A stretch of 64,000 nt of DNA from Vitrella brassicaformis CCMP3155. Lineage: Eukaryota > Protista > Chromerida. The notes below the pieces were generated by a model. It was given only the letters and a program-made list of their open reading frames with translations. It was not told the origin of the DNA and searched no databases. The position numbers were made by a program, and so were the translations under genes. The stretch is taken from NCBI GenBank assembly GCA_001179505.1, contig CDMY01000279.1, positions 62,001-126,000 on the forward strand, in the 5' to 3' direction. Below are positions 43,139-63,644 of this stretch, piece after piece. Every line of letters starts with the position of its first letter. Positions within the stretch are counted from its first letter, which is position 1.

Positions 43139-45043
43139 CTACAAGGGTCGTTCGGCTTGTTCGTCGCTGTCCTCCCTGCCACTCAGCTCTGTCTCGTGAG
43201 GCGTGAAATACGGCGTGTGGCTCACTGCACCTGCACACACACACACATACACATACACACATCTGGACCAGCTGTCTCTCTCTATCGTGCCATAGAGTGT
43301 GTGCCTCCGTCTGTGGTCCGTGCGTGTGATGTCCCTCCCTCCCTCCCTCCCTCCCTCCGACCTTTGTTTGCTTCCCTCTGCTTCGCCGTGACGGGTGTGC
43401 CGATGAACACATGCCGCCCTCCACCTGTGGACTGCAGCCACTCGATCGGGTCTGAGGCCCGACGGCCCCTGTGTTGGGGGCTGGCCGAGATAGACCTCAG
43501 TAGGCTGTCGTTGATCCTCAGCAGCTGCTCGGTGAGCGACAGGGCCTCACCGCTGGCCATCTCCAGCCCCCAACGCTCTATGGACCTTAACGATGCACTG
43601 CACACGCACACACACACACACACACGCACACACCACACACGCAAAGAGAGAATGCAAGCAGAGCAGATCAACACACATGAGATGGGAAAGAGGCGGGCGC
43701 GTGACGTACCTGAGTTGTTTTCGCCATAGTTTATCGAGGACATGGCAAAGATTGGACGAGTAGGGCGCCGATGCCGCTTGCCGGTGCGCCAGCCATGTCT
43801 CCCACTGCCGCATGCAGGCCTGCATCCGCCGCTGCTGCAGCCGGTGCACAAGACTGACGAGCCTCTCGGCCGGCGGCTGGTGGGGCCATGCTACAGCCCT
43901 CGTGTGGCGATGCCACCTCCTCCAAGCGTCCATCTGCGCCCGCCTTCTCGCCCGATCCACAGCCCGACGGAGGAACACCTGCCGCCTCTCATAGTCATCG
44001 ACCCTCTCGCGTAGCCGGGCCCAGGCGTGGACGAGCCGGTCGTTGACGAGCTTGAGCAGCATCGATCTCAGATAGCAGGACCGCACGTGCACATAGCCCT
44101 TGGCCGACTCCTGGCTGTGAGTCACCAGCATGTCCACCATAATAGCGTCGCTCGACGCTTGGCAGCGGCTCGCCTGCGCCTCACTGGCGCCCACTGCATT
44201 CGCCGCCCCGACGGCCGAGGCGCCAAGCCGCATTTGCGAGAAGGCTGAGCCACACCGCTTCCGCAGCCAGTCTGCGATGCGTGAAGCCGCTGCCTCCCTC
44301 TGAGACGCCTGGGCCCTCCGCATGGCTGAGGTGGCCTTCTCCTCTGCCTGCCTTTGTGCATCCTCCAGCTGGCGAGTCATCTTGGTCCGGGTGGCCTCCA
44401 TGGCCTCAGCGAGGTCCGCCATGGCCGCCGCACAGCCACGGTGGGCATTCCACAGCAGCCTCACAAAGGCCCGAACCAGCCGTCGCTTCTGCCGCCAGAA
44501 GTGCCACGTCGCCATTCTCTGCAGCCCCGCCTCAACCACTTTCCGCCTCTCCCTTTGCAGTTCGCTGTCCACGGCCTGCTGCAGCCTCACAAGCGTCGCA
44601 TCTGCCGACGCGGCGGTCCGAAAGCGCCCCAGCGGCACTGGCCCGGCAGCTGCAGTTGGGGCCAGGCCCGCGTCGCTGCCCGCGGCCACGGGCGGTCCTT
44701 GTGCGGCCTCCTTGCTACGCTGCACGGCCTGCTGCAGTGCCTCAATCCATCTGTCCATCTCCTCGTGAGTCTCGGACCGCAGTGAGAACTCCCGGCGGCT
44801 CTTGGGGGTGGCGGGCGACGTGACGGCGAAGCGAATGACGAACTTGGTGGGGTCTTTCCAGGTGGCAGCGGAAGTGACCTCCGTGACGGTGGCGAGTGCG
44901 ATGGCCTTTTTGACTTCGCTGCATTGGTGCGAGGCGAATGCGATGAGGAAGTTGTGTTGGATGGCGTACCACTCCATGGCCCAACGCTTCCGGTAGAGGC
45001 CCTTCAGACGCTCCAGCGGCCCCTGAAGCTCACAGCTCTCCAT
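43139..45043 (-). CDS. PH-domain protein with coiled-coil and Trp/Arg-rich helical repeats
   Basis: KRWAMEWYAIQHNFLIAF...KFVIRF...REFSLRSETHEEMDRWIEALQQAV is a PH signature. Sfi1-like repeats RAFVRLLW, HAWARLR, DAWRRWH, ACMRQW follow. The 3' end is uncertain. Confidence 0.7.
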
Positions 45044-45334
45044 TCTCGCAGTCTCAGACAGACGGGGGGCGAGCTCGCGCATGCAATGCAGATCACACGA
45101 CGTATGTCGGCGTCACCATCCAAAGGCATTCACACACGAAAAACACACGGCAGGTCTCATGCAGATCTGTACAACAACACCGCCCCATCGTTGGTCACTC
45201 AGGGACGGAGAGAGATGCATAGTCACTCAGTCAGACAGACAGCCAGCCAGCCAGCCAGCCAGCCAAACAGACAGACAGACAGGCAACAGATTAGACAGGT
45301 GCGTCTGTGTGTATGCTAATTCCCCCGGCCGGCC

Positions 45335-45408
45335 ACGCTAGTAGCAACATCAGGACCGACGCTGGCCGCCTGGCCTTTTCACGACGGCCCCTCACACGCC
45401 ACACGCGC
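45335..45408 (-). promoter_or_regulatory. SECIS element (form 2, GUGA core) in the 3' UTR of the SelK gene
   Basis: Minus-strand RNA: GUGGCG-U-GUGA-G-GGGCCGUCGU-G-AAAA-GGCC-AGGC-GGCC-A-GCGUCGGUCC-U-GA-U-GU-UGCUAC. It forms helix I, a UGAN/NGAN quartet, a 10-bp helix II with one U-U, unpaired AAAA and a 4-bp apical mini-stem. Confidence 0.88.
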
Positions 45409-45603
45409 TTGCACGGCCCCTCACCCCCATGACATCCCATCAGCGATGCCGATGGTCCGTCCGTCTGTTCGGGCGTCTTCAAGAGATGCAGCACAGATCC
45501 GGCAGACGACAAAACTGCCGGCCGCCACCTAGATGGCGGCCAGCAGTGTTTGTCCGTCCGTCCGTCGTTGGGTGGATCTGGTTGCATGGTCTTGAGGACG
45601 CCC

Positions 45604-46021
45604 TTATCGTCATCCGCCGCCACCTCTGACGTTCATCCTCGGCCGGAGACCCCTCATGTTGGGCCCTGGTGGCCCGCCATCTCCCGGCCGCCGGCGGCCG
45701 TTGCTGTTGACCTGAGGGTGGAAGAGCGTCTTGAAGAACAACAACACCTGCAGCCGCGACACGACAGACAACACACACACACACACAGATGTATGTGGCC
45801 TGGCGGCTGGGTGCGCGTCGGTTCTTTGGGGACCCACCATGGCGACGAGCCACCAGAAGAACCGAATGATGGGATTGTTGCTCTCTGCGGGACCCTCCTG
45901 CAACCAAACACGCAGCGCACACACGTGTGTCGCTCTACTTCGCAGCGGAGCGTATTCTCTGTAATCCAATCACCCACACCTGTATTTTGCCGCCGACGAT
46001 GCGCGGAGGAGCCCGCTCCAT
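45604..46021 (-). CDS. SELENOK: Selenoprotein K-like ER membrane protein, 81 aa, Sec as penultimate residue
   Basis: Exons 46021-45980, 45897-45838 and 45747-45604 give MERAPPRIVGGKIQEGPAESNNPIIRFFWWLVAMVLLFFKTLFHPQVNSNGRRRPGDGGPPGPNMRGLRPRMNVRGGGG-TGA-CGA-TAA. The FFW...VLLFFKTL TM and G/P/R-rich tail match SelK, and a SECIS lies downstream. Confidence 0.9.
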
Positions 46022-46192
46022 CCTTGTCGGCTGCTACAAGGCCCGGTAGTCGCCCTTAAGACTGGAGTTCTCCTCTGAACGAAACACACAAAAGCCACAG
46101 CAGGTCAAATCAATTGAGTTTGGAAACGGGCTCAGCAACAGTCCACGCTACCTTTGTGTCCTTCCGTTCTTCCTTCTCCTCCCTCCTTCATC

Positions 46193-46200
46193 TGCGAGCT
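46193..46200 (+). promoter_or_regulatory. Representative copy of a recurrent promoter-proximal octamer TGCGAGCT
   Basis: The same octamer occurs at 5057, 10360, 16287, 26888, 41803, 46193 and 51006 (+), and at 33497 and 53356 (-). Eight copies lie within about 250 bp of an inferred start codon; 53356 is about 400 bp from the 53755 start. Confidence 0.55.
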
Positions 46201-46267
46201 TGGAAGCAAAAGCGCGCGGTCAGCAGCAGCAGAAAAAGGGACGAAAAAGGAGGATGTCCTTCGTCAG

Positions 46268-46895
46268 ATGTCGATAGAAACTGTCAAGGAGCACTTCAAC
46301 TCGATAAGGGAAAGCAAAGGTGAGTGAGCAAATGATACAATGATACACAGATCTGTGCAGCATAGATCAGGACATGCATCCGTGTGTGTGTCGTTGTGTG
46401 TGTGTGCACTGCAGTGGTGGTAGACTTGCGTCCGATAGCCAACGCGCCGGTGCTCAAGACGGGCAAGTTCAAGGTCTCGGGGCAGGAGACCTTCGCCGAC
46501 CTCAAAAGCAGAATCGAGACCATGGTCAAGAGAGATACAGTGGTGCGCATGAGTGGAGTGCACTCATTCCAGACAAACACGGCTGCCTGCCTGCCTGCCT
46601 ACCTACCGCTGCCTGCCTGCCTACCTACCGCTGTCTGTGTGCTGTTCTTCCCTCGGTCAGTATTTGTACGTCAACAACAGCTTTGAGCCCTCGCCTGACG
46701 ACTACCTCTTTGACCTGTTCGAGGTGACTGACTGAATGACTGACCCTCTCACGGCCCCTTGCCAGACTGTACGGCTCGTCTGTGTGTGTAATGTGTGTGT
46801 AATTGGATTGGATTGGTCCGATGGTGGGACTGCAGTGCTTCAAGACCGGCGAGCAGCTCAACATCGGCTACAGCCTCACTCCCGCATTCCACTGA
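46268..46895 (+). CDS. ATG12: Autophagy protein ATG12, lacking the C-terminal glycine; 4 exons
   Basis: MSIETVKEHFNSIRESK/VVVDLRPIANAPVLKTGKFKVSGQETF.../YLYVNNSFEPSPDDYLFDLFE/CFKTGEQLNIGYSLTPAFH-stop. Confidence 0.92.
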
Positions 46896-62438: not shown

Positions 62439-63644
62439 ACAGAACACCCAGTCGGACACACACACACATTTCATTGATCCATCCATACATGTACGTAGCT
62501 AAAAGGGGGAGGAGAGGGGCATCCCATCCGACGACATCACATCACACACGAAAGACAGACCGATAGAATGCAGACGCACCGTGACGCGCCTTTTTTTCTC
62601 TTGACCCACCCACCCACCCACCCACCGACCCACCCACCGACAAACTACCGACAGACAGATGTATTTGCACTTCCTTGTTTTTCCTTGGTTCATTTATGGA
62701 TCGATGCACTGGATGGACGTTGATTTATTGCCTAGGACGCTTCCGCCTGCACATTTGTCTGTCCGCCCGGCTGCTAAGTTGGCTGTCTTGCTTTGTGTGG
62801 TTTGTGTGTGTGTGTGTGTATGTGTGATTGTGTGTACAGCTGTCTGTCTGTCCGTCCGTGGAAAGCGTTGTGTATAATGGATGTATTGTTGGCTGGCTGA
62901 CTGATGTGCATGGCAAGAGACCTGCCTCCATCCCTCGGTGTGTGTATATAAATTTCAAGGAGACGTCAGTCACAGGTGCACATCCGTCCAGCACAAGCAC
63001 CCCTGCAAATCAATACCCATGCAAACAGGGCACGCTCACATCCTGACTGACATCCCATTTCCACCTTTCGGTGAATGAATACCTTTCAGGCATTCCCCTC
63101 CAGCTCTCAAACACGCACTCACCAGAGTACCACTGGAAGAGAGTGAGTGACTGAGACAGAGAGCTGCGTGTGTACACTGGCCAGTCTGTGTTGGGGTGAT
63201 ACCCATGCAAGAAGGGAGAGTCGCAGCTGGGGTGCGTGTGAGTGACTGTCTTGGCTCTCCGTTGTGCTCTATCCCCTCAGTTCCCTTGTTGCAATGCGGC
63301 GAGTGAGCGGAGCAATCGTTCGTTGAGTATTCGTCTAGGGTACATGGACGTGTGCGCGTCTGCCGTGCCTGCGGCGACATTCCCGTGGATACACACGCTG
63401 TCGTTTGAGTCACGCTGTCGTTTGAGTCACTTTGTTGATAAATGACCACACACATGCACTCACTATAGTGTCTCTCTGTCTGCCTGTCTGTCCAGAAGGT
63501 ATACCTGCCGTACGCAGACGTACGTCTGGCATGTCTGTCTACACTATGTAGGTGGGGTGGGTGGCTACAGCTTGCGTCCCCACGCCACGGGACACCCCCA
63601 CCAGCCCAGCCAGCCCCAGGCATGACATACGTACGTACATCAAA

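Follow-up and report, generated by a model that had tools for sequence, protein, structure and literature searches.

Gene structure and transcripts

The locus lies on the minus strand of the window, that is, the whole 64-kb stretch of contig CDMY01000279.1 from Vitrella brassicaformis CCMP3155 that was analyzed. It comprises a short three-exon gene with an in-frame UGA near the end of its coding frame, and a 3′ UTR that contains a very stable hairpin directly after the stop codon and a second, SECIS-like hairpin further downstream. In transcript order, and in coordinates of the window, the features are:

46022-46098, minus strand: 5′ UTR; transcript contig L002 begins at 46098, and Logan RNA contigs reach 46076
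46021-45980, minus strand: coding part of exon 1, 14 codons (MERAPPRIVGGKIQ); the junction 45979/45897 is present in three runs
45898-45979, minus strand: intron 1, 82 nt, GT..AG; spliced out in contigs of runs X1, X2, and X8
45897-45838, minus strand: exon 2, 20 codons, encoding the first half of the transmembrane (TM) helix (..IIRFFWWLVAM)
45748-45837, minus strand: intron 2, 90 nt, GT..AG, with a (CA)n run; spliced out in contigs of runs X1, X2, and X8
45747-45604, minus strand: coding part of exon 3, 45 codons followed by TGA, CGA, and TAA, encoding the remainder of the TM helix (VLLFFKTLF) and the Gly/Pro/Arg-rich tail and ending GGGG-UGA-CGA-UAA
45612-45610, minus strand: UGA, putative selenocysteine (Sec) codon, codon 80 of 81, in the last exon with C as the next base; the UAA occupies 45606-45604
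45007-45603, minus strand: 3′ UTR; contigs pass through the SECIS and end at about 45105-45007, with the end of L002 at 45007
45603-45471, minus strand: proximal hairpin, 133 nt with 54 bp, interrupted, beginning directly after the UAA and present in the mature mRNA contigs
45403-45340, minus strand: putative type II SECIS element, matched by Rfam SECIS_1, whose GUGA core occupies 45395-45392; with all of helix I included, the hairpin spans about 45327-45418

Joined across the two introns, the frame opens with ATG and runs through 79 sense codons to TGA, CGA, and TAA. An in-frame TAG lies 15 nt 5′ of the ATG, and the start of the coding region is therefore well defined. The open reading frame list of the window halts at the UGA (45610-45612), as the preliminary description of this DNA, made from the sequence alone, had remarked. 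That description also proposed three GT-AG exons and an 81-codon frame ending GGGG-TGA-CGA-TAA, and its junctions are reproduced exactly in assembled RNA: Logan contigs from three runs (X1, X2, and X8), which belong to two studies, contain joints that skip precisely 45898-45979 and 45748-45837, each bounded by CT..AC on the plus strand, while those of DNA run X3 are collinear with the locus and skip neither intron. No single-letter difference separates any Logan run from the window, which indicates that the TGA is genomic and unedited, and identical in DNA and RNA.

Intron 2 is in frame and free of stop codons, and its retention would insert 30 residues within the TM helix. This form was rejected; the RNA contigs show the spliced form only, and splicing alone restores the FFW..LFFKT helix typical of the family. 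An Rfam match to the ceN89 snoRNA at 45754-45806 reflects the CA repeat of intron 2, falls far under its cut-off, and was likewise discarded.

The spliced Logan contigs are unbroken from 46076 to 45292, at which point a (GGCT/GTCT)n microsatellite interrupts placement. Beyond it, Logan pieces covering 45064-45217 and 45105-45217 have a depth similar to that of the SelK contig, and further downstream the depth drops to 3, roughly a hundredfold lower. An independent transcript contig, L002 (920 nt), spans 46098-45007 with both introns removed. Because the spliced contigs and L002 are continuous through all of these features, the mature SelK mRNA includes the UGA, the proximal hairpin, and the SECIS. 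It had been anticipated from the sequence that the 3′ UTR would cover 45335; the spliced contigs and L002 pass through 45340 and beyond. Polyadenylation before 45408, which the same description named as evidence that would count against a selenoprotein, was not seen in the assembled transcripts, although contigs of this kind give no proportions of 3′ ends or of SECIS-carrying transcripts.

Several further observations concern the transcripts and their surroundings. Runs X1 and X2 derive from one study in which they are labeled as different organisms; their spliced SelK contigs are identical, with depths of 66.7 and 65.7, and may reflect two strains, relabeling, or cross-contamination. The microsatellite in the SelK 3′ UTR, at 45218-45291, has a four-base unit, (GGCT)n/(GTCT)n, and similar (GACG)n runs occur both in and beside the proximal hairpin. 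Downstream on this strand, the neighboring gene encodes a 564-aa PH-domain protein with its ATG at about 45043; the SelK 3′ UTR reaches or runs into the start of this gene, and L002 extends 37 nt into its coding sequence, although the depth of the PH-domain gene itself is about a hundredfold lower. On the plus strand, an ATG12 (APG12) gene with introns at 46318-46412 and 46542-46659 is arranged head to head with SelK. The starts of the SelK and ATG12 transcript contigs are only about 120-135 nt apart (window positions 46098-46232), which suggests a short promoter region shared by the two genes.

Protein product and family assignment

The 79-residue product encoded upstream of the UGA matches the Pfam family SelK_SelG (PF10961) over residues 12-68, with 34.2 bits against a cut-off of 23.3 (E 4e-08); exon 3 alone scores 18.8 bits. 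A hydropathy calculation, used here in place of a topology predictor, identifies residues 24-42 (IIRFFWWLVAMVLLFFKTL) as the sole strongly hydrophobic stretch, and the best 19-residue window has a mean Kyte-Doolittle value of 1.93. In the tail that follows (residues 44-79), 23 of the 36 residues (64%) are Gly, Pro, or Arg. Cysteine is absent throughout the product. Within the ESM Atlas, the neighbors by language model and structure are selenoprotein K clusters; the model of the Vitrella protein itself has low confidence (pLDDT 0.41), as expected of a mostly disordered protein.

The UGA, as codon 80 of 81, would place Sec in the second position from the C-terminus. The SelK/SelS group is defined by one TM helix in the N-terminal region, a positively charged tail rich in Gly, and Sec as the second- or third-to-last residue (PMC10650576), and SelK is present in almost every eukaryote that uses Sec (PMC2375036). 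The assignment to SelK made from the sequence alone is thus borne out by a SelK_SelG score above cut-off, a single hydrophobic helix, a tail rich in Gly, Pro, and Arg, and a penultimate UGA.

Toxoplasma encodes SelK, and compared with SELENOK from animals, green algae, Dictyostelium, kinetoplastids, and Toxoplasma, the Vitrella protein is of similar size (81 aa, vs. about 94 in human). Features in common with SELENOK include the N-terminal ..NGQ/GGK-I.. motif, the FFW...LFFKT TM helix, and the Gly/Pro/Arg-rich tail, as well as a near-C-terminal Sec after a run of glycines (a UGA here), a type II SECIS, and truncation by automated annotation. In human SELENOK the Sec is third from the end (GG-U-G-R), whereas in Vitrella it would be penultimate (GGGG-U-R). 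A second point of difference is the SECIS core, which is GUGA in Vitrella and AUGA in SELENOK.

SELENOS (VIMP) falls with SelK in the SelK/SelS grouping and shares with the Vitrella protein one TM helix, a tail rich in Gly, and a next-to-last Sec, which is predicted in Vitrella; its mRNA also has a stem-loop where the 3′ UTR begins, 9 nt past the UGA (PMC3628699). However, there is no sequence similarity between the two, and SELENOS is a coiled-coil protein of about 189 aa whose Sec has a Cys partner. The Vitrella protein, unlike SELENOS, matches the SelK profile and lacks Cys.

Run exhaustively against 1.8 billion representative sequences, HMMER returned five matches, one of which is a genuine relative. 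This sequence (P0004) is an 82-residue MMETSP protein, the single member of its own cluster, with 39% identity to the Vitrella product (BLASTP E 3e-12). It is known as a protein alone, with no DNA recorded, and it stops right after the GGGG run at the same aligned place; judged from the aligned residues, this ending fits a conserved UGA. Two of the other matches (P0003 and P0005) are repetitive, low-complexity translations by sequence and were considered unrelated, and a 1437-aa protein (P0002) with 10 repeated TM-segment matches was judged spurious from the match pattern alone. Word-indexed protein searches returned nothing beyond the Vitrella SelK product itself and P0004. Metagenome scans, one with the two-sequence alignment and one with a degenerate DNA pattern for FFW..LFF[KQ]T, both returned no match. 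A sequence search of the PDB gave a match to Toc34 (E 0.49), which is spurious.

The SECIS element

Downstream of the UGA, a hairpin on the same strand matches Rfam SECIS_1 (RF00031) from end to end, with 26.4 bits against a gathering threshold of 35 (E 0.017 in a 1.6-kb search). Across the whole 64-kb window it remains the sole SECIS match (E 0.69), and no match of any Rfam family in the window attains its gathering score. The minimum free energy (MFE) fold has an energy of -53 kcal/mol (z -3.4), is dominant in the ensemble (frequency 0.68), and is retained when the whole proximal 3′ UTR is folded together with it. Helix I has 6 bp and extends outward; the internal loop, UGUGA facing GAUGU, forms the quartet as U.U, G.A, and A.G. 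Helix II consists of 7 and 3 pairs around one U.U mismatch, with 11 nt from GUGAG to AAAA, and the apex contains an unpaired GAAAA bulge, a GGCC/GGCC stem, and a 4-nt loop, an arrangement that makes the element type II. Each hairpin feature listed in the preliminary description (helix I, a GUGA/UGAU quartet, a 10-bp helix II, the AAAA, and the GGCC/GGCC stem) is recovered in the MFE fold and the SECIS_1 match. The UGA lies 217 nt 5′ of the SECIS core, which is on the same strand and within the 3′ UTR of the mature mRNA.

In the core, G-UGA-G on the 5′ side faces U-GA-U on the 3′ side, with tandem G.A pairs; this fits UGAN/KGAW, the conserved kink-turn core of SECIS elements (PMC3753652). The GUGA form had been described from the sequence as a less common SECIS variant. 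That view does not hold for algae, as GUGA_AA is the commonest SECIS pattern in Chlamydomonas and Ostreococcus, and a G before the UGA is usual in both of these and in sponges (PMC3473315). The Vitrella element has the same G before UGA and the same AA(AA) motif as these SECIS elements and does not differ from them in kind.

A separate pattern scan over 128 kb of strand (NUGAN, 10-13 nt, AA, and NGAN, with pairing in helices I and II) recovered the SECIS together with one weak match at 62969; shuffled sequence yields 0.25 matches per window. The match at 62969 (minus strand) has a fold z of -0.3 and no Rfam match, falls within the chance expectation of 0.25, and was rejected.

The score below the Rfam gathering threshold is the main formal weakness of the SECIS call. 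The consensus model of SECISearch3 was built without the elements of Ostreococcus, Toxoplasma, and others, on account of their lineage-specific characteristics, and the same study mentions five T. gondii SECIS elements (PMC3753652). As such lineage-specific elements were left out of that consensus, a metazoan-weighted model may score an alveolate SECIS too low. From the window-wide E value, a rough chance of a SECIS-like match in the SelK 3′ UTR is 0.69 × ~600/128000, or ~0.003.

The proximal 3′ UTR hairpin

The proximal hairpin has an MFE of -84.6 kcal/mol (z -8.94), and its stem starts at nt +10 counted from the U of the UGA, leaving a 6-nt spacer. It stays folded alongside exon 3 or the remaining UTR. 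Among 5110 GC-adjusted folds of 150 nt from both strands of the 64-kb window, ranks 1-4 all correspond to this hairpin. No second copy of its 32-nt apical palindrome, or of 24 nt of its 3′ arm, is present in the window. An Rfam match to mir-2131 at 45494-45570 coincides with the apex and is an artifact, scoring 18 bits where the cut-off is 92.

Structures in comparable positions are known from other selenoprotein mRNAs. The Sec redefinition element (SRE) of SelN starts 6 nt past its UGA, the same spacing as in Vitrella, and a stem-loop of SelS lies 9 nt past its UGA (PMC3628699). Of the eight human mRNAs that encode a C-terminal Sec, six, among them SelK, can form a stem-loop right after the stop; the human SelK stem has 8 bp, far smaller than the Vitrella hairpin, and its stem-loop could be deleted without effect in a surrogate assay (PMC6844570). 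The Vitrella hairpin also differs from the SelN SRE and proximal stem-loops in its extent, with 133 nt and 54 bp, and in lying wholly within the 3′ UTR.

The hairpin may have nothing to do with recoding and instead represent an inverted duplication, the remnant of a foldback element, or a small-RNA precursor, an explanation to which we assign about an even chance. Its arms contain (GACG)n-like microsatellite sequence, which is common nearby, and its sole Rfam match is the meaningless miRNA-like one noted above. Against such an origin, the arm sequences are not repeated elsewhere in the window, the most stable fold of the entire 64 kb places its first pair 6 nt from the only Sec codon, and six of the eight human C-terminal-Sec mRNAs can form a stem-loop at the same place (PMC6844570). 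By analogy with the SelN SRE and the SelS proximal stem-loop, it is tentatively suggested that the hairpin might modulate recoding or termination at the UGA, although we regard such a function as rather less probable than its absence.

Decoding of the UGA

The best explanation of these data is very probably that the locus is the Vitrella SELENOK gene, expressed as a three-exon mRNA in which the penultimate UGA is read as Sec by means of a type II SECIS. The UGA at 45612-45610 itself is almost certainly a Sec codon. On this model, the three-exon mRNA would direct synthesis of a membrane protein of 81 residues that crosses the bilayer once and carries a disordered tail rich in Gly, Pro, and Arg. 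The SECIS, 217 nt past the UGA, would recruit SBP2, eEFSec, and Sec-tRNA; Sec80 would then be inserted at the UGA, Arg81 added, and translation terminated at the UAA, to give a C-terminus of ...GGGG-Sec-Arg. None of tRNA-Sec, SBP2, eEFSec, PSTK, SepSecS, or SPS2 is encoded within the 64-kb window. Mammalian SelK and SelS work with p97. By analogy with the mammalian protein, Vitrella SelK would be expected to reside in the ER and to act in ERAD or as a cofactor of palmitoylation (acyl transfer).

Sec insertion at this codon may be inefficient or dependent on selenium, in which case both 79- and 81-residue forms would be made and the proximal hairpin would set the balance between them. There is precedent in mammalian SelS, which recodes weakly and is tuned by proximal 3′ UTR elements (PMC3628699, PMC6844570), and the very stable hairpin 6 nt past the UGA is well placed to affect a ribosome paused there. 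However, deletion of the proximal stem-loop of human SelK was without effect on recoding (PMC6844570), and production of two forms in Vitrella is possible but on balance doubtful.

It is very improbable that the UGA is a plain stop, with a Sec-less protein of 79 residues and a hairpin that is a chance look-alike or a decayed SECIS: the public gene model does end at the UGA and the SECIS_1 score is under the Rfam gathering score, but the truncated protein, with neither Sec nor Cys, would have no reactive residue; no core SECIS feature is missing from the hairpin, which is the sole match in the window, on the correct strand and in the gene's own 3′ UTR, where a chance match is expected at only the ~0.003 given above; and the order UGA, one codon, UAA matches the C-terminus of SelK/SelS (PMC10650576).

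Public annotation and significance

Returning to the reading of the UGA as Sec, the 79-residue product is on public record as CEL99394.1 and UniRef100_A0A0G4EP42 of Vitrella brassicaformis CCMP3155, under the UniRef name "Selenoprotein K"; it also occurs in transcriptome-derived sequence sets of MMETSP and EukProt. The public gene model on contig CDMY01000279.1 agrees in its exons and terminates at the TGA, with Sec80 and Arg81 missing. The preliminary description had called the selenoprotein hidden and predicted that automated annotation would truncate it. The truncation occurred as foreseen, with CEL99394.1 ending at the UGA after 79 aa; "hidden" is accurate with respect to this truncated end but not to the gene, which is annotated with correct exons and named. 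Errors of this kind at the UGA are a textbook difficulty in selenoprotein annotation (PMC1557815).

Within the library of papers searched, none names both Vitrella and selenoproteins, and Vitrella and Chromera are absent from the main text and one supplementary file of a survey of selenoproteomes in algae published in 2020. Both the family and the mechanism are well known, as is the GUGA core; Vitrella SelK is an ordinary member of its family, and its novelty is at the level of annotation. The correction to CEL99394.1 and A0A0G4EP42 is of consequence in that the missing residues include the only reactive residue of the protein. In addition, the evidence for decoding of UGA as Sec in Vitrella, which is photosynthetic and related to the apicomplexan parasites, gains a clean, RNA-supported case.

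The proximal hairpin is the single element of the locus that could repay experiment. If it does act on recoding or termination, structures close to the UGA at C-terminal Sec codons would be ancient or repeatedly reinvented rather than a vertebrate peculiarity, and chromerids would provide a free-living, selenoprotein-rich outgroup for understanding how apicomplexan parasites pared down Sec decoding.
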